From Macrostomum hystrix (lineage: Eukaryota > Animalia > Platyhelminthes), in NCBI GenBank assembly GCA_950097015.1, contig CATNEN010000001.1:5022001-5086000 (forward strand): a stretch of DNA of 64,000 bases. Direction: 5' to 3'. The position numbers and the translations under genes were made by a program. The notes beneath the pieces were generated by a model. That model saw nothing but the letters and a program-made list of their open reading frames with translations, had not been told where the DNA came from and searched no databases. Every line of letters begins with the position of its first letter. Position 1 is the stretch's first letter. Positions 51,421 to 63,824 of this stretch are shown piece after piece.

Positions 51421-51523
51421 AATAGAACCCTGAAACATAACAATGCCGAAACATCACTACACCGAAAATTCGCAATACCAAAGCGTCAAATTACATCGAT
51501 AATCTCTCCTTCCAGCTAACGCC

Positions 51524-51979
51524 ATGGCCACTCCATCGTCTAACGATCCGCAGCAGCAGCAGCAGCAGCACGATCGCTTTCAACAATTGCAAGACGAGCT
51601 AGGCGCACTCATTGAAAACTGTTGGGAGGCCGGTATAATGGTCTGCAATTATCAGCCTCATGTTAATCTTCAACACAAAATGAACTTTCTAGTTAGCCGT
51701 TTAGCCGCTCTAGATCGAGCCAAAGCTCAAGTTGCCGATGTTCAAGTGCCTCTAGCCGTACTAAAGTACATTGACGAAGGCCGCAATCCTCAATTGTACA
51801 CTAGGCACTGCTTAGAGACCGCTTTGCAACGAAACGAAGAAGTTAAAGGCAAATTAGAGAACGTTAATCGATTTCGAACCCTACTATTGGCTGAATTGTC
51901 TCAGGCATTCGAGCAGGATATGAGTCGATATCGAAGTCTTCGGGCTGATCCAACACCGCCGTCTATTGGCGACGAATGA
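51524..51979 (+). CDS. MED10: Mediator subunit 10 (Nut2), single exon
   Basis: VQVPLAVLKYIDEGRNPQLYTRHCLETALQRNEEVKGK is the Med10 signature. Confidence 0.95.
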   Translation: MATPSSNDPQQQQQQHDRFQQLQDELGALIENCWEAGIMVCNYQPHVNLQHKMNFLVSRLAALDRAKAQVADVQVPLAVLKYIDEGRNPQLYTRHCLETALQRNEEVKGKLENVNRFRTLLLAELSQAFEQDMSRYRSLRADPTPPSIGDE

Positions 51980-52399
51980 TGGACTGATGGATTATCGTTG
52001 TTGTTGTTGTGTTGTAACTTACCTCTTTGTGTAACTTGCTAGACATGATGTCTAACCGTAATATTTTTCGTTCAAACTATGAATTACAAGCCAGAGCAAT
52101 AAAGAACCTAATGTATATACCGGTTTCTAGGAAATTCCAAATGGGATTTCCCTGAAAAACTCACCTGCTAGGGCAATCCTACATCCTTTATTGTTCTTTA
52201 ACATGAAATTGCTCCTCATCAGTATCTAAAAGGTGGGATTTTTCCCATATAAAAATCGACACCTAATCAGTGTCTATCAACAGAGATTTCCCCATTGTTA
52301 ATCGACTCATAATCAGTACCTAACAGGTGAGATTTCCCTATTAAAAATCGACTCTCTACCTGTGCCTACCTGTGCCTAACATCTGGGATTTCCCTAAAA

Positions 52400-54932
52400 A
52401 ATCGACTCCTAATACGTAACTAGCGTCTGTGATTTCCCTAACAAGAATAGACTCCTAATCAGTGTCTATTGTCTGGGATTTCCCTAACAAGAATAGACTC
52501 CTAATCAGTGTCTATCGTCTGGGATTTCCCTAACAAGAATAGACTCCTAATCAGTGTCTATCGTCTGGGATTTCCCTAACAAGAATAGACTCCTAATCAG
52601 TGTCTATTGTCTGGGATTTCCTTAACAAGAATAGACTCCTAATCAGTGTCCATTGTCTGGGATTTCCCTAACAAGAATAGACTCCTAATAAGTGTCTATT
52701 GTCTGGGATTTCCATAACAAGAATAGACTCCTAATCAGTGTCTATTGTCTGGGATTTCCCTAACAAGAATAGACTCCTAATATATATATATATATAGACG
52801 CAAAAAGTTAGATAGCTTTTGCGCGCACGCGCTCGCAGAACAGACTCCTAATCAGTGTCTATTGTCTGGGATTTCCCTAACAAGAATAGACTCCTAATCA
52901 GTGTCTATTGTCTGGGATTTCCTTAACAAGAATAGACTCCTAATCAGTGTCTATTGTCTAGGATTTCCCTAACAAGAATAGACTCCTAATCAGTGTCTAT
53001 CTTTTAGGATTTTCCTAACACGAATAGACTCCTAATCAGCGTCTAACGTCTGGGATTTCCCTAAGAAAAATAGACTCCGAATCAGTGTCTATTGTTTGGG
53101 ATTTCCCTAACAAGAATAGACTCCTAATCAGTGTCTATTGTCTGGGATTTCCCTAACAAAAATAGACTCCGAATCAGTGTCTATAGTCTGGGATTTCCCT
53201 AACAAGAATAGACTCCTAATCAGTGTCCATTGTCTGGGATTTCCCTAACAAGAATAGACTCCTAATCAGTGTCTATTGTCTGGGATTTCCCTAACAAGAA
53301 TAGACTCCTTATCAGTGTCTATTGTCTGGGATTTCCCTAACAAGAATAGACTCCTTATCAGTGTCTATTGTCTGGGATTTTCCTAACACGAATAGACTCC
53401 TAATCAGCGTCTAACGTCTGGGATTTCCCTAACAAAAATAGACTCCGAATCAGTGTCTATTGTCTGGGATTTCCCTAACAAGAATAGACTCCTAATCAGT
53501 GTCTATTGTCTGGGATTTCCCTAACAAAAATAGACTCCGAATCAGTGTCTATAGTCTGGGATTTCCCTAACAAGAATAGACTCCTAATCAGTGTCCATTG
53601 TCTGGGATTTCCCTAACAAGAATAGACTCCTAATCAGTGTCTATAGTCTGGGATTTCCCTAACAAGAATAGACTCCTAATCAGTGTCTATTGTCTGGGAT
53701 TTCCTTAACAAGAATAGACTCCTAATCAGTGTCCATTGTCTGGGATTTCCCTAACAAGAATAGAATCCTAATCAGTGTCTATTGTCTGGGATTTCCCTAA
53801 CAAGAATAGACTCCTTATCAGTGTCTATTGTCTGGGATTTTCCTAACACGAATAGACTCCTAATCAGCGTCTAACGTCTGGGATTTCCCTAACAAAAATA
53901 GACTCCGAATCAGTGTCTATTGTCTGGGATTTCCCTAACAAGAATAGACTCCTAATCAGTGTCTATTGTCTGGGATTTCCCTAACAAGAATAGACTCCTA
54001 ATCAGTGTCTATTGTCTGGGATTTCCCTAACAAGAATAGAATCCTAATCAGTGTCCATTGTCTGGGATTTCCCTAACAAGAATAGACTCCAAATCAGTGT
54101 CTAACGTCTGGGATTTCCCTAACAAGAATATACTCCTAATCAGTGTCTATTGTCTGGGATTTCTCTAACAATAATAGAATCCTAATCAGTGTCTAACGTC
54201 TGGGATTTCCCTAACAAGAATATACTCCTAATCAGTGTCCATTGTCTGGGATTTCCCTAACAAGAATATACTCCTAATCAGTGTCCATTGTCTGGGATTT
54301 CACTAACAAGTATAGACTCCTAATCAGTGTCTATTGTCTGGGATTTCCCTAACTAGAATAGACTCCTAATCAGCGTCTAACGTCTGGGATTTCCCTAACA
54401 AGAATAGACTCCTAATCAGTGTCTAACGTCTGGGATTTCCCTAACAAGAATATACTCCTAATCAGTGTCTATCGTCTGGGATTTCTCTAACAATAATAGA
54501 ATCCTAATCAGCGTCTAACGTCTGGGATTTTCCTAACAAGAATAGACTCCTAATCAGTGTCTAACGTCTGGGATTTCCCTAACAAGAATATACTCCTAAT
54601 CAGTGTCCATTGTCTGGGATTTCCCTAACAAGGATAGACTCATAATCAGTGTCTATTGTCTGGGATTTCCATAACAAGGATAGACTCATAATCAGTGTCT
54701 ATTGTCTGGGATTTCCCTAACAAGGATAGACTCATAATCAGTGTCTATTGTCTGGGATTTCCCTAACAAGGATAGACTCCTAATCAGTGTCCATTGTCTG
54801 GGATTTCCCTAACAAGGATAGACTCATAATCAGTGTCTATTGTCTGGGATTTCCCTAACAAGGATAGACTCATAATCAGTGTCTATTGTCTGGGATTTCC
54901 CTAACAAGAATAGAATCCTAATCAGTGTCTAT
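52400..54932. repeat. Minisatellite, 46-bp unit AACAAGAATAGACTCCTAATCAGTGTCTATTGTCTGGGATTTCCCT
   Basis: Direct inspection. Confidence 0.97.
52782..52841 (-). mobile_element. ~60-bp insertion with (TA)n tail and 11-bp target-site duplication
   Basis: Interrupts a 46-bp array; AGACTCCTAAT occurs at both 52771-52781 and 52842-52852. Confidence 0.65.
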
Positions 54933-55206
54933 AAGTGTTGAATTTACCTAATAAAAATTTATACTAATCAATGTTTGATTTCCTTGTACTTTAGTTTTAA
55001 TTCTCGCTACTAAAGTACGTAAATAAACTTGTTGTACTGTAATAACGGACGTCGTTAATATAATTTTTAAATAAAATATATTGTCACGACTGTAAAAATA
55101 GAAATTGATGACCAATTCTTACAACTCGTGCTTAAAAATAATTTTTATATTAGATTTTTATTTTAAAAGTGTTATAGTTTATCAATATAAATCTAATTTA
55201 TTGAAT

Positions 55207-55220
55207 CGTAACTGTTTCAG
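55207..55220 (+). promoter_or_regulatory. Putative trans-splice acceptor of NUB1 (cgtaactgtttcag)
   Basis: TTTCAG preceded by a branch-like TAAC; the NUB1 frame starts in phase 0; in-frame TAA at 55209-55211. Confidence 0.75.
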
Positions 55221-58200
55221 GATGAACACGAGTTGCTTGTCAAACTGCGTCAAGCATTACGCAGTAGATCTATTAAACTGTGGGAGCCGCCATATACTTT
55301 TAAAACCAATGACGGTCTGGGCGAAGCGGACTCTACTGGGATGAGTTCATTAACGACTAGTTTGTCCAATGAATTGCGCCTATGTCCAGCGGCCTGCGCT
55401 AAGGCTTTGGAAAATTTGCGTAGGCAAGCTTTGGATAATGCCGAATCACTGGCTCATTATCGAGCTACACAGGAGGCTACTATGAAAGTGCGTCTACCTC
55501 GGGGTCACGAGCCTCAGGTGCTTAGAATCCGGTGCAGCCTACAGTCAACAGGTTATCAATTCAAATCGTTGATTGTAGCTCAGGCTGGTCAACAACTGTC
55601 TATGGCCGGCGTTACCCTAATCTGCAATGGTCGAGTGTTGGACGACGCATTGTCGCTTGGTTAGTCTTGTCTAAAATTCGAACTCTCGACCTTTTTGTTG
55701 TGTAGTTCAAAGCAAACTACAATTTTCATTAAGGTTTGAAGTTAGAATCCAAAGTACTACTAATGAGCAGTAAAATTATGCCTAAATTTGTTAAGGGGTT
55801 AGCGTGTTGGCCTCTCGAACCATTGTAACTGAGCTCGATTCCGCGGCGAGGCCACATTCATATAGGGGCGCTGCCACGGCGAGAAGGCTTAGGGTTGTCG
55901 TAAAATTTGAGGTCCAACCTCCAAGGCACAGTGAGAGTGTACACTGCCTGACAATGAGAAAGTCTGTGTACGGTATCTGTGTGCGTGTGTGCTCAGGAGT
56001 CAGTGAAATGGGCAGAATTGCCTCCTCGCTGTCTGCAAGTCTATTGTCACCAAATGATGTGCCATTGCCCGCAGCCCTCCTGCAATGATTATATATTATT
56101 ACTATGCCTCTAATGGTGGTGTTATAGTAAAATATTTACTATATATCCCAATCCCTATGTTAGGCAACCAAGGCTTTCAGAATGCTAGCAGCGTTATGGT
56201 TTTAATACGCGCCGCTCCGGACGATGTTGAAAATCTGCGCACCTCCGCCGACGACGCCGACGCTCTACGCGAAGCCGAATCCGAAGCCGTACTATTGGCC
56301 GGCGAAGATGACCCAGAATCCGGACCGGGCGGCGGCATTGGCGTCGGGACCGGCATGCTAGATGTGACTAATCAGAGAGGAGAACGATTGCAGCTGCCCA
56401 AGGAGCATAGGAAGGCTCTGTACTATGCGATGATTCTCGGAGAGAAGGTTTGTTATGTGCAATGGTGTCAAAAGTTAATTTCTAGATTGAGAGTTTCTAG
56501 ATTGAGAGTTTCTAGATTGATAGTGGAAAGGTAGAGTTGATTGGGAGATGTGAAGTAAATAGTGAGAGGTATAGTAGATTCGGATAGGAAGAGTAGATAG
56601 GGAGAGGTAGAGTAGATAGGGAGAGGTAGAGTAGATAGAGAGGTAGAGTAGATAGGGAGAGGTAGAGTAGATCGGGAGAGGTAGAGTAGATAGGGAGAGG
56701 TAGAGTAGATAGGGAGAGGTAGAGTAGATCGGGAGAGGTAGAGTAGATAGGGAGAGGTAGAGTAGATAGGGAGAGGTAGAGTAGATAGTCAGAGGTAGAG
56801 TAGATCGGGAAGGTGCAGGGGTAGAGTGGAAGGTGCAGGGGTAGAGTAGAAGGTGCAGGGGTAGAGTAGAAGGTGTAGTGGTAGAGTAGAAGGTGCAGGG
56901 GTAGAGTGGAAGGTGCAGGGGTAGAGTGGAAGGTGCAGGGGTAGAGTGGAAGGTGCAGGGGTAGAGTAGAAGGTGCAGGGGTAGAGTAGAAGGTGTAGTG
57001 GTAGAGTAGAAGGTGCAGGGGTAGAGTGGAAGGTGCAGGGGTAGAGTGGAAGGTGCAGGGGTAGAGTGGAAGGTGCAGGGGTAGAGTGGAAGGTGCAGGG
57101 GTAGAGTGGAAGGTGCAGGGGTAGAGTGGAAGGTGCAGGGGTAGAGTGGAAGGTGCAGGGGTAGAGTGGAAGGTGTCTTACTTGACTTGGCTTGCAGACT
57201 GGCCCAACTCGTGTCCCAATTAACTTCAGGGCAAGGCCGCCCTTCGCTCCGGTGAGCACGGTCGCGCACTACTCCTGCTGCTATCAGCCGACGAAGCATT
57301 TCAACGCGTTGATCGCAGTCTATTAGACAAGGTCGATAATCACGCTCTACTGCAGCTAGACACCGTCTGGTGCTATCTGTGCCTGAGTCGGCTTGACGAA
57401 CTAGCCGACGCTTGGGATCGACTCGGCAAGGCCGAGCGGGCCCTGGCTAAGGCCTACGGAGAGCGACTGGAACGAGTTGAAGCTGTTAAAGGTGAGATTG
57501 CGTTGATCATTATTTAAAATACTCTTCTCTACATAAGATCTACTTCTCTCCGCTAAAAAAACCGCTCCCTCCCTTTAAAATCCGCTCCGTCCATTTAAAA
57601 TCCGCTTCCTCCATTTAGAATCCGCTCCATTCATTCAGATTCCACTCCCTCCATTCAGGATCCGCTCCCTACATTCAGTATCCGCTCCTTCCATTTAGAA
57701 TCCGCTCCATTCATTCAGATTCCACTCCCTCCATTCAGGATCCGCTCCCTACATTCAGTATCCGCTCCTTCCATTTAAAATCCGCTCCCTACATCTAGAC
57801 TCTATTATCTACATCTAGACTCTATTATCTTCATCTAGAATCCGCTCCCTTTATCAAGAATCCGCTCCCTTCATCTAGAATCCGCTCCCTTCATCTAGAA
57901 CCAGCTCCCTTCATCTAGAATCCGCTCCCTTCATCTAGAATCCGCTCCCTTCATCTAGAACCAGCTCCCTTCATCTAGAACTGGCTCCCTTCATCTAGAA
58001 CCAGCTCCCTTCATCTAGAATCCGCTCCCTTCATCTAGAACCCGCTCCCTTCATCTAGAACCAGCTCCCTTCATCTAGAACCAGCTCCCTTCATCTAGAA
58101 TCCGCTCCCTTCATCTAGAATCCGCTCCCTTCATCTAGAACCAGCTCCCTTCATCTAGAATACGCTCCCTTCATCTAGAATCCGCTCCCTTCATCTAGAA

Positions 58201-61200
58201 CCAGCTCCCTTCATCTAGAATTCGCTCCCTTCATCTAGAACCAGCTCCCTTCATCTAGAACCAGCTCCCTTCATCTAGAACCCGCTCCCTTCATCTAGAA
58301 CCAGCTCCCTTCATCTAGAACCAGCTCCCTTCATCTAGAATCCGCTCCCTTCATCTAGAATACGCTCCCTTCATCTAGAATCCGCTCCCTTCATCTAGAA
58401 TCCGCTCCCTTCATCTAGAACCAGCTCCCTTCATCTAAAATCCGCTCCCTTCATCTAGAATCCGCTCCCTTCATCTAGAACCAGCTCCCTTCATCTAGAA
58501 CCAGCTCCCTTCATCTAGAATCCGCTCCCTTCATCTAGAACCAGCTCCCTTCATCTAAAATCCGCTCCCTTCATCTAGAATACGCTCCCTCCATCTAGAA
58601 TCCGCTCCCTTCATCCCTTACAGGCACCTCAGCCGGCGGCGAAAGAATCCATCTACTGAGGCTGCACCTACTAAAAGCAATGTGCTGCTTCTATAGCAAT
58701 CGATTGGACGAGGCCACGAATGAGGCCAACTTAGCCTCTGGCGAACTGGATAGATTAGCCATAGACGATGCCGGACTGAGCAGACTAATGGAGATGGGAT
58801 TCACCGTGTTGGAATCTCGCCTAGCGTTGCGTCATTGCGCCAACAATGCCGAAATGGCCACGGAATGGATTGTAGCCCGCAGGGAGCGACAACGAAATCA
58901 AGCCATTGAGAGGCGTCTGGCGCGACGTTTGGGCTATCTGGACGATGGCAAAACGGCCGTATCGGCTAGCGATTGTCGTCGGTTAATTGAAATGGGCTAC
59001 TTAGAGAGCCACTCGCATGAGGCTCTGGTGCTGACTAGAAATAATCTAGAAGCTGCACTGACCCTGCTGCAGGAAGATCAGGATAGATTGCAGGTGATTT
59101 TAGTCGGAAATATGTCTTTCTTTGTAGGTCAAGTTAGCGACGGGTTTAATCATAAAAAATGAAAATAGACCGGGTGTTTAAATAGGTTTACAGCCATTAG
59201 ATTCTCCGTTCAATAACCACTACTCAATAACAGTATTTGACCAGCCTAAACTCGAGCTGATAGAGGATTAGTAACTTAGATTGGATTAGGATCTAAGAGA
59301 GGATTAGTAACTGAGATGGTATTAATAACAGAGAAGATTAGTACCTTATAGATTAGAGTATTAGTAAGGACTGAAGGCATGAGGAACTGAAATGAACTGA
59401 TTAGGTACTAGAGTAAGGTGTTACTGATACGAGATTAGTAGCTGAGGGAGGATTAGTAACTAATATGGCATTGGATAGGAGAGGATTAGGAGCTGGGAGG
59501 GGATTAGTAACTAATATGGCATTGGATAGGAGAGGATTAGGAGCTGGGAGGGGATTAGTAGCTAATATGGCATTGGATAGCAGAGGATTAGGAGCTGGGA
59601 GGGATTAGTAACTAATATGGCATTGGATAGCAGAGGATTAGGAGCTGGGAGGGATTAGTAACTAATATGGCATTGGATAGGAGAGGATTAGGAGCTGGGA
59701 GGATTAGTAACTAATATGGCATTGGATAGCAGAGGATTATGAGCTGGGAGGGGATTAGTAGCTAATATGGCATTGGATAGCAGAGGATTAGGAGCTGGGA
59801 GGGGATTAGTAGCTAATATGGCATTGGATAGCAGAGGATTAGGAGCTGGGAGGGGATTAGTAACTAATATGGCATTGGATAGGAGAGGATTAGGAGCTGG
59901 GAGGGGATTAGTAGCTAATATGGCATTGGATAGCAGAGGATTAGGAGCTGGGAGGGATTAGTAACTAATATGGCATTGGATAGCAGAGGATTAGGAGCTG
60001 GGAGGGGATTAGTAGCTAATATGGCATTGGATAGCAGAGGATTAGGAGCTGGGAGGGGATTAGTAACTAATATGGCATTGGATAGCAGAGGATTAGGAGC
60101 TGGGAGGGGATTAGTAGCTAATATGGCATTGGATAGCAGAGGATTAGGAGCTGGGAGGGGATTAGTAGCTAATATAATATGGCATTGGATAGGAGAGGAT
60201 TAGGAGCTGGGAGGGGATTAGTAACTAATATGGCATTGGATAGCAGAGGATTAGGAGCTGGGAGGGGATTAGTAACTAATATGGCATTGGATAGGAGAGG
60301 ATTAGGAGCTGGGAGGGGATTAGTAACTAATATGGCATTGGATTGCAGAGGATTAGGAGCTGGGAGGGGATTAGTAACTAATATGGCATTGGATAGCAGA
60401 GGATTAGGAGCTGGGAGGGGATTAGTAACTAATATGGCATTGGATAGCAGAGGATTAGGAGCTGGGAGGGGATTAGTAACTAATATGGCATTGGATTGCA
60501 GAGGATTAGGAGCTGGGAGGGGATTAGTAACTAATATGGCATTGGATAGCAGAGGATTAGGAGCTGGGAGGGGATTAGTAACTAATATGGCATTGGATAG
60601 CAGAGGATTAGGAGCTGGGAGGGGATTAGTAACTAATATGGCATTGGATAGCAGAGGATTAGTAGCTGGGAAGGGATTAGTAACTAATATGGCATTGGAT
60701 AGCAGAGGATTAGGAGCTGGGAGGGGATTAGTAACTAATATGGCATTGGATAGGAGAGGATTAGGAGCTGGGAGGGGATTAGTAGCTAATATGGCATTGG
60801 ATAGCAGAGGATTAGGAGCTGGGAGGGGATTAGTAGCTAATATGGCATTGGATAGCAGAGGATTAGGAGCTGGGAGGGGATTAGTAACTAATATGGCATT
60901 GGATAGCAGAGGATTAGGAGCTGGGAGGGGATTAGTAACTAATATGACATTGGATAGCAGAGGATTAGGAGCTGGGAGGGGATTAGTAACTAATATGGCA
61001 TTGGATAGCAGAGGATTAGGAGCTGGGAGGGGATTAGTAACTAATATGACATTGGATAGGAGAGGATTAGGAGCTGGGAGGGGATTAGTAACTAATATGG
61101 CATTGGATAGCAGAGGATTAGGAGCTGGGAGGGGATTAGTAACTAATATGGCATTGGATAGCAGAGGATTAGGAGCTGGGAGGGATTAGTAACTAATATG

Positions 61201-63824
61201 GCATTGGATAGCAGAGGATTAGGAGCTGGGAGGGGATTAGTAACTAATATGGCATTGGATAGGAGAGGATTAGGAGCTGGGAGGGGATTAGTAACTAATA
61301 TGGCATTGGATAGCAGAGGATTAGGAGCTGGGAGGGGATTAGTAACTAATATGGCATTGGATAGGAGAGGATTAGGAGCTGGGAGGGGATTAGTAACTAA
61401 TATGGCATTGGATAGCAGAGGATTAGGAGCTGGGAGGGGATTAGTAGCTAATATAATATGGCATTGGATAGGAGAGGATTAGGAGCTGGGAGGGGATTAC
61501 TAACTAATTTGGCATTGGATAGCAGAGGATTAGGAGCTGGGAGGGATTAGTAACTAATATGGCATTGGATAGCAGAGGATTAGGAGCTGGGAGGGGATTA
61601 GTAGCTAATATAATATGGCATTGGATAGGAGAGGATTAGGAGCTGGGAGGGGATTAGTAACTAATATGGCATTGGATAGCAGAGGATTAGGAGCTGGGAG
61701 GGATTAGTAACTAATATGGCATTGGATAGGAGAGGATTAGGAGCTGGGAGGGATTAGTAACTAATATGGCATTGGATAGGAGAGGATTAGGAGCTGGGAG
61801 GGGATTAGTAGCTAATATGGCATTGGATAGGAGAGGATTAGGAGCTGGGAGGGGATTAGTAGCTAATATAATATGGCATTGGATAGGAGAGGATTAAGAG
61901 CTGGGAGGGGATTAGTAACTAATATGGCATTGGATAGCAGAGGATTAGGAGCTGGGAGGGATTAGTAACTAATATGGCATTGGATAGCAGAGGATTAGGA
62001 GCTGGGAGGGATTAGTAACTAATATGGCATTGGATAGGAGAGGATTAGGAGCTGGGAGGGGATTAGTAGCTAATATGGCATTGGATAGCAGAGGATTAGG
62101 AGCTGGGAGGGGATTAGTAGCTAATATAATATGGCATTGGATAGGAGAGGATTAGGAGCTGGGAGGGGATTAGTAACTAATATGGCATTGGATAGCAGAG
62201 GATTAGGAGCTGGGAGGGATTAGTAACTAATATGGCATTGGATAGCAGAGGATTAGGAGCTGGGAGGGATTAGTAACTAATATGGCATTGGATAGGAGAG
62301 GATTAGGAGCTGGGAGGGGATTAGTAGCTAATATGGCATTGGATAGGAGAGGATTAGGAGCTGGGAGGGGATTAGTAGCTAATATAATATGGCATTGGAT
62401 AGGAGAGGATTAGGAGCTGGGAGGGGATTAGTAACTAATATGGCATTGGATAGCAGAGGATTAGGAGCTGGGAGGGATTAGTACCTAATATGGCATTGGA
62501 TAGCAGAGGATTAGGAGCTGGGAGGGATTAGTAACTAATATGGCATTGGATAGGAGAGGATTAGGAGCTGGGAGGGGATTAGTAGCTAATATGGCATTGG
62601 ATAGCAGAGGATTAGGAGCTGGGAGGGGATTAGTAGCTAATATGGCATTGGATAGCAGAGGATTAGGAGCTGGGAGGGGATTAGTAGCTAATATGGCATT
62701 GGATAGCAGAGGATTAGGAGCTGGGAGGGGATTAGTAGCTAATATGGCATTGGATAGCAGAGGATTAGGAGCTGGGAGGGGATTAGTAACTAATATGGCA
62801 TTGGATAGCAGAGGATTAGGAGCTGGGAGGGGATTAGTAACTAATATGGCATTGGATAGGAGAGGATTAGGAGCTGGGAGGGGATTAGTAGCTAATATGG
62901 CATTGGATAGCAGAGGATTAGGAGCTGGGAGGGGATTAGTAACTAATATGGCATTGGATAGCAGAGGATTAGGAGCTGGGAGGGGATTAGTAGCTAATAT
63001 GGCATTGGATAGCAGAGGATTAGGAGCTGGGAGGGGATTAGTAGCTAATATGGCATTGGATAGCAGAGGATTAGGAGCTGGGAGGGGATTAGTAGCTAAT
63101 ATGGCATTGGATAGGAGAGGATTAGGAGCTGGGAGGGGATTAGTAACTAATATGGCATTGGATAGGAGAGGATTAGGAGCTGGGAGGGGATTAGTAGCTA
63201 ATATGGCATTGGATAGCAGAGGATTAGGAGCTGCTAGGGCCTAAGGGGTTTCTTAACAGTAAAAATAGACTCTTCTTACTCTTCTATCCCATTTCTCCCC
63301 AATCCATTTTACTCGTCTAGACTTTAGCCGATCGTCGGTACAATGCCAGACTGCAACTGGTTCTGGACACAGCCTCAGCTGCGGGCATCGCTGCAGCTGA
63401 TATAGAACGATTCTCTAGCAAACTGGTCCGCTTAGTCGGTGCTAGATTAGAAGCAATCAGTCGTCAAGAAACCGCCTCCTCTAGGAGAAAGGCACAGCAG
63501 ATTCTAATCGGTTGCGTTGACGATTTGCTAGACGATCAGTCGAATGTTGACGTCGCCGGCAGTTCCGGCGCTGCATCGTCCGATGCCGCGTCGCCTGCCG
63601 CCTCTTGGACTACGGAATCCGAAGGCGAAGCCGATCCTTCGTCCGCCGCCCGCAATATCGGGGTTGTTGCCGATCTGCGCGCCAATTCTCAGCGTCAACG
63701 TAGGGCGTTGGAAAAACTACGCGACGAAGTTGGCGATCAGGATGAAGAGTCGTATTTGGATTCGGATCTGCAGGAGGAGCGACGGCAGTTGGACAGGCTG
63801 TGGGCCATGCTGGGTGCTAAATAG
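55221..63824 (+). CDS. NUB1: NEDD8 ultimate buster 1 (UBL + UBA domains); no ATG before the conserved N-terminus. Exons 55221..55659, 56164..56447, 57230..57491, 58624..59093, 63321..63824
   Basis: KLRQALRSRSIKLWEPPYT, UBL (LICNGRVL), TNQRGERLQLP..KALYYAMILGEKG, DNHALLQLDTVWCY, and two UBA motifs (LMEMGF, LIEMGY). All four introns are GT-AG and phase-consistent. Confidence 0.9.
55795..56100 (+). mobile_element. SINE-like repeat, copy 7 (NUB1 intron 1)
   Basis: Head cctctcgaacc..gagctcgattccgcggcgagg, core, 3' end gcagccctcctgcaat and an AT-rich tail. Confidence 0.7.
56560..57176. repeat. Compound purine-rich minisatellite (19-bp GTAGAGTAGATAGGGAGAG, then 20-bp GTAGAGTGGAAGGTGCAGGG), NUB1 intron 2
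   Basis: Direct inspection. Confidence 0.93.
57560..58616. repeat. Minisatellite, 20-bp unit TCCGCTCCCTTCATCTAGAA, NUB1 intron 3
   Basis: Direct inspection. Confidence 0.95.
59440..63235. repeat. Minisatellite, ~51-bp unit AATATGGCATTGGATAGCAGAGGATTAGGAGCTGGGAGGGGATTAGTAACT, NUB1 intron 4
   Basis: Direct inspection; source of the MALDSRGLGAGRGLVTN artefact ORFs. Confidence 0.97.

Follow-up and report, generated by a model that had tools for sequence, protein, structure and literature searches.

The NUB1 gene of Macrostomum hystrix raises the question of where its protein begins: the first coding exon opens in phase 0 directly behind a splice acceptor, and the conserved N-terminus of the protein follows at once. 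The window analysed here is a 64-kb stretch of the M. hystrix genome, which was examined together with transcript contigs, the spliced-leader (SL) RNA genes of the assembly, and the NUB1 orthologues of Macrostomum lignano and human. In sequences below, ^ marks a splice site.

Identity and Structure of NUB1

NUB1 is a single-copy gene in the M. hystrix assembly, and its coding part in the window is distributed over five exons (Table 1). The queries of all searches were single exons or proteins from databases. Exon 1 codes for the LWEPPYT region at the N-terminus and for the greater part of the ubiquitin-like domain (UBL), for which Pfam matches at residues 79-146 are weak. Exon 1 matches human NUB1 (PDB 8usd, 8usc, and 8usb) with an E value of 9e-9, where residue 5 of the query corresponds to residue 7 of the chain (8usd_g), and a family profile including exon 1 matches human NUB1 with an E value of 2.7e-137. 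In tblastn, NUB1 of M. lignano (P0036) is colinear with the five exons of the window. The human match of exon 1, the UBA domains of exon 4, and this five-exon match confirm the gene as NUB1, the name it had been given in the initial annotation.

Human NUB1 (8usb, 8usc, and 8usd) has the same LWxPPYT N-terminus, UBL, helical core, UBA domains, and C-terminal DYLD..L.EE motif. The two proteins are about 30% identical, and the M. hystrix N-terminus is one residue shorter, with a Met1 that the gene apparently does not encode. No M. hystrix transcript protein was found in a homologous-protein search with M. lignano NUB1 as the query, the same kind of search with exon 1 alone gave no match, and metagenome scans with the first 26 nt of exon 1 and with the exon 1 protein were both blank.

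The introns are rich in repeats. Long tandem repeats occupy positions 56480-57300 and 59767-63244 in introns 2 and 4, respectively, and the latter produces a repeated pseudo-ORF, MALDSRGLGAGRGLV. The dispersed repeat of intron 1 (55790-56100, about 310 bp) is possibly SINE-like; 1,968 candidates were seen in the genome at first look, and the scored copies are 78-85% identical. In RNA-derived contigs the repeat reaches a very high summed depth, as much as about 22,000. No tRNA was predicted on this repeat by ARAGORN.

Table 1. Features around the 5' end of NUB1 and along the gene. Positions are those of the window, except for the SL RNA gene families, which are placed in the genome.
Feature	Position	Strand	Basis and remarks
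MED10, same-strand upstream neighbour, own ATG	51524..51979	+	PF09748, E 4.9e-32; AATAAA near 52099
46-bp satellite, about 57 units, 92-94% identity	52218..54932	.	occupies most of the MED10-NUB1 spacer
Outron, 288 nt, 77% A+T, between satellite and acceptor	54933..55220	+	stops in all three frames
In-frame TAA, four codons 5' of exon start	55209..55211	+	sequence
Putative trans-splice acceptor TTTCAG	55215..55220	+	sequence; matches M. lignano trans-acceptor motif [T/C]TNCAG (PMC8629364)
NUB1 coding exon 1, phase 0 at 5' end	55221..55659	+	contigs, homology; ends in phase 1 before GT at 55660
First in-frame genomic ATG (residue 48)	55341..55343	+	sequence; 3' of conserved LWEPPYT
Intron 1 (GT..AG)	55660..56163	+	spliced out in contigs (three runs); holds a dispersed repeat, about 310 bp
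NUB1 exon 2 (3' end +/-1 nt)	56164..56447	+	UBL end, acidic linker, start of helical core
NUB1 exon 3, approximate bounds	57227..57502	+	tblastn with M. lignano orthologue
NUB1 exon 4, approximate bounds	58614..59099	+	two UBA domains (PF00627, E 1.3e-18)
NUB1 last exon, approximate 5' bound	63321..63824	+	stop codon ends at 63824, after ...RRQLDRLWAMLGAK
SL RNA gene families	G000:C39:12667800-12668900; G000:C1:16046423-16049449		

Acceptor, Reading Frame, and Position of the Start

Read base for base, the acceptor ctgTTTCAG has its AG at 55219-55220, and the frame of the exon opens at 55221. The plus strand around the junction is ...aatcgTAActgTTTCAG^GATGAACACGAG..., and the start letters of exon 1, directly 3' of the acceptor, are GATGAACAC. 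The codons from 55221, GAT GAA CAC GAG TTG CTT GTC AAA, are translated as DEHELLVKLRQALRSRSIKLWEPPYT, and the longer translation is DEHELLVKLRQALRSRSIKLWEPPYTFKTNDGLGEADSTGM.... A colinear genomic start is ruled out by the in-frame TAA at 55209, and at 55194 and 55188, further upstream, the frame is stopped again. An ATG is present at 55222-55224 but out of the NUB1 frame, and the one at 55341 is the sole in-frame genomic ATG within exon 1. The A+T content is 51% in exon 1 versus 77% in the 288-nt outron. The initial annotation had given the acceptor, the frame, the TAA, the out-of-frame ATG, and the first in-frame ATG with coordinates that proved exact in every case.

In alignments, the codon that opens exon 1 is matched by residue 3 of human NUB1 and by the first residue of P0036, the longest M. 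lignano orthologue. P0036 begins with EEQELLHKLRQ and aligns residue for residue from 55221, with 22 of the first 26 residues identical in both species. The invariant LW is preceded by 21-24 residues in 11 NUB1 homologues for which a Met is annotated; M. hystrix has 19 genomic residues there, or 20 when a leader Met is counted. When 15 NUB1 homologues were aligned, the columns L13, K19, L20, W21, and P24, all of them before Met48, were invariant. Given the N-terminal homology and these invariant columns, the first 47 codons are coding, and as the match of exon 1 with the human N-terminus begins at residue 7, NUB1 of M. hystrix starts at or just before the acceptor. Phase 0 by itself is a one-in-three event; what goes beyond chance is that the first codon of the exon aligns with a conserved N-terminus. 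Judged from the sequence, the start of NUB1 must coincide with 55221 or come directly before it, and the genome provides none there. That no usable genomic ATG exists, as had been claimed from the letters of the window, is borne out by the stop upstream and by a first in-frame ATG that comes only at residue 48, after the conserved motif.

Transcript Contigs at the Acceptor

Contigs of four runs (X1, X2, X5, and X6) were aligned on positions 54940-56470 of the window; such contigs show neither true 5' ends nor minor isoforms. Record 23 of X6 (2134 nt) places its letters 24-462 on 55220-55658 and its letters 463-748 on 56163-56448, with intron 1 gone. Record 16 of X5 (2135 nt) is the same molecule in the opposite strand and has 24 letters beyond 55220, and intron 1 is likewise removed in the X1 contigs. 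As the GT..AG joint is spliced (55658>56163, cut +1), the contigs are RNA-derived. Both full-length contigs, from X5 and X6, quit the genome match at 55220, and 23-24 non-genomic letters remain at their 5' ends. This confirms the boundary of exon 1, and the mature mRNA therefore parts from the genomic sequence exactly at the acceptor, with a short 5' stretch of foreign letters before it. As the AG still contributes one base to the match, the final foreign letter is G, which is what a leader ending in ...ATG predicts. Depth is zero over 54940-55199 in X5, X6, and X1, and in the bin 55200-55251 it fits coverage beginning at 55220.

Where the overhang lies, how long it is, and the G at its end suggest that it is the spliced leader. 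An overhang of 24-25 letters would be expected from a 31-mer assembly graph if the leader is common to thousands of mRNAs, since a word then becomes unique only with about 6-7 gene letters, and 24-25 leader letters are left.

In X2 only, one low-depth contig (depth 2.2) covers 54940-55129 and continues into the satellite. It may represent DNA or unspliced precursor RNA.

Spliced-Leader RNA Genes

Two families of SL RNA genes were found in the M. hystrix genome, and the leader ends with ...GCATG^GTAAG in both. SLa has at least 20 exact copies of ...CAATTTATTGCATG^GTAAG and is identical to the published SL of M. lignano, a leader of 35 nt (PMC8629364). Its gene context is ...CGGTCTCTTACTGCGAAGACTCAATTTATTGCATG^GTAAGACACCGT..., and its copies on contigs 15, 17, and 42 recur at intervals of about 11.7 kb. 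SLb, with at least 60 copies of ...CTCTTTTTTGCATG^GTAAG, has the leader ...GACTCTCTTTTTTGCATG^GTAAG, which differs from SLa in three leader positions, and shares a 927-bp tandem unit on contig 39 with a 5S rRNA gene. Copies of both families are each followed by an Sm-like ATTTTTG/A. No matching family was recognized by Rfam on the SL RNA loci, where the only match was 5S rRNA beside SLb, and the 3' 12-mer of the SL has no copy within the 64-kb window. Because both families end in ATG^GT, either of them would donate an AUG in frame, with ...GCAUG-GAU-GAA-CAC read as M-D-E-H.

Dozens of leader-like copies in the genome continue with letters other than GT (...GCATGGC, ...GCATGAA, and ...GCATGCA), and these look like retroposed trans-spliced RNAs.

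Origin of the Start Codon

Very probably, NUB1 lacks a genomic start codon and receives its AUG, in frame, from a trans-spliced leader. The pre-mRNA would be trans-spliced at TTTCAG^G (55220^55221), and the leader, with AUG as its last three letters, would be joined straight to GAU GAA CAC.... The mature mRNA is thus predicted to be ...UUGCAUG-GAUGAACAC, with the leader end ATTTATTGCATG or TTTTTTGCATG expected directly 5' of GATGAACACGAGTTGC at the junction. Translation from the leader AUG would produce M-DEHELLVKLRQALRSRSIKLWEPPYT..., in which the genomic exon gives codon 2 onward. The initial annotation had proposed such an SL-derived AUG (MDEHELL...), and support for it comes from the SL RNA genes ending in ATG^GT and from the short non-genomic overhang ending in G; as the last step, ribosomes presumably start at the leader AUG.

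Other origins of the start have to be weighed against this. The ATG joined to 55221 might be supplied by an upstream exon spliced in cis and not by the leader, given that the overhang is known by its position, its length, and its last letter G. A scan of 51980-55220 for such micro-exons found three in-phase ATG...GT/GC candidates with the ATG at most 24 nt from the donor, all with poor donors. One of them, ATGTATATACCG^GTTTCT at 52111-52122, is the only candidate to end in G, as the contigs require, and is located at the MED10 poly(A) site. However, a unique exon in the MED10 3' UTR would assemble further than the 23-24 nt that the contigs reach past the junction, the donors of the candidates bear little resemblance to GT[G/A]AG, the stretch 54940-55199 is uncovered in X5, X6, and X1, and the M. 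lignano models are 5'-partial at the same codon. Also, the satellite is free of ATG, and only three GGT sites are present in 51980-55220. An upstream micro-exon ending in ATG^GT, for which the initial annotation had advised a check, is absent, as the plus strand has no ATGGT between 51642 (inside MED10) and 55627. Altogether, a cis-spliced exon is highly improbable as the source of the codon.

Somewhat less improbable, and still very unlikely, is a trans-spliced mRNA whose translation starts at the internal AUG at 55341 (Met48), with the 47 preceding codons as 5' UTR. This codon has in its favour that it is the only genomic in-frame ATG of exon 1, but the 47 residues ahead of it are conserved as protein, to the extent already described for M. 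lignano, the LWxPPY motif, like other columns, stays unchanged between flatworm and human, and a scanning ribosome would reach the in-frame leader AUG earlier. The most improbable origin is a non-AUG initiation (CTG at 55212, TTG at 55233, or CTG at 55245) on a transcript without trans-splicing. Near-cognate codons are present in frame and the low-depth X2 contig covers part of the upstream region; nevertheless, X2 may contain DNA, its contig stops short of the exon, the full-length X5 and X6 contigs do not continue into upstream DNA, and a beginning at 55233 or later would lose conserved residues.

An AUG-donating leader on NUB1, the preferred origin, is one more case of a known flatworm mechanism. 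As cited in later papers (PMC12582326, PMC9851317, and PMC5832876), Cheng et al. 2006 reported that flatworm SLs all end in AUG, which is the initiator for some mRNAs, and the terminal ATG of the Macrostomum SL was pointed out by Wiberg et al. 2023 (PMC10468722). In the mRNAs of Cheng, Cohen, Ndegwa, and Davis 2006 (J Biol Chem 281:733; "slORFs" in PMC9851317), as those papers present them, the leader likewise ends with AUG^GU. These mRNAs and NUB1 are also alike, within the same accounts, in a phase-0 acceptor that adjoins codon 2 of a conserved protein and in having no genomic in-frame AUG ahead of the conserved N-terminus. The present case differs from them in the organism, a free-living Macrostomum, and in the gene, NUB1; translation from the leader AUG was, according to these sources, tested in Schistosoma, whereas here we infer it.

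Neighbouring Genes and the MED10-NUB1 Spacer

PEX12 (Pex2_Pex12 match, E value of 2e-17), MED10, and NUB1 are encoded on one strand of the window. The raw spacer between MED10 and NUB1 is about 3.1 kb long, from the AATAAA near 52099 to the acceptor at 55220, and about 0.4 kb when the 2.7-kb satellite, which has no ATG on the plus strand, is subtracted. For M. lignano operons, a threshold of 1 kb for the repeat-adjusted spacer was used (Ustyantsev and Berezikov 2021, PMC8629364). MED10 and NUB1 are thus same-strand genes with a repeat-adjusted spacer below 1 kb and a putatively trans-spliced downstream gene, three features expected of an SL-resolved operon. The likeness to the SL genes and operons of M. 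lignano (PMC8629364) includes the acceptor motif [T/C]TNCAG, the same-strand neighbours, and the adjusted spacer under 1 kb, whereas the raw spacer of 3.1 kb, composed mostly of the 46-bp satellite, sets the M. hystrix genes apart. From the arrangement of the genes, a PEX12-MED10-NUB1 operon is plausible.

A TTCCAG acceptor that ends at 51515 is found 8 nt ahead of the MED10 ATG (51524). Trans-splicing of MED10 at this acceptor, if it occurs, would place the leader AUG out of frame, where it would open an overlapping upstream ORF.

Gene Models and Significance for Macrostomum

All three NUB1 copies of M. lignano (PAA70556.1, PAA94157.1, and PAA84289.1) are annotated as "partial" and have no Met. 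Pieces of PEX12, MED10, and NUB1 are joined in yet another M. lignano model, the chimera UniRef A0A1I8JPN7, and follow each other there as they do in the M. hystrix window, which means that the gene order PEX12-MED10-NUB1 is conserved. A forecast made from the M. hystrix letters, that gene predictors would truncate or fuse such genes, has come true in M. lignano with these three partial models and one chimera. It is a tentative and rather doubtful proposal that the start codon of NUB1 was lost before the split of M. lignano and M. hystrix, with the leader AUG needed ever since, and that PEX12, MED10, and NUB1 form a conserved operon, with a 2.7-kb satellite free of ATG tolerated in the spacer of the polycistronic pre-mRNA.

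The main value of the finding is for annotation. Standard gene finders will cut NUB1 at Met48, call it partial, or fuse it with its neighbours, and all three outcomes, truncation, "partial", and fusion, are displayed by the M. lignano records. A rule that prepends the leader ATG at phase-0 trans-splice acceptors would mend such gene models of Macrostomum. NUB1 would also add a conserved housekeeping gene whose expression strictly needs trans-splicing, which is of modest interest for the fixation of leader dependence.
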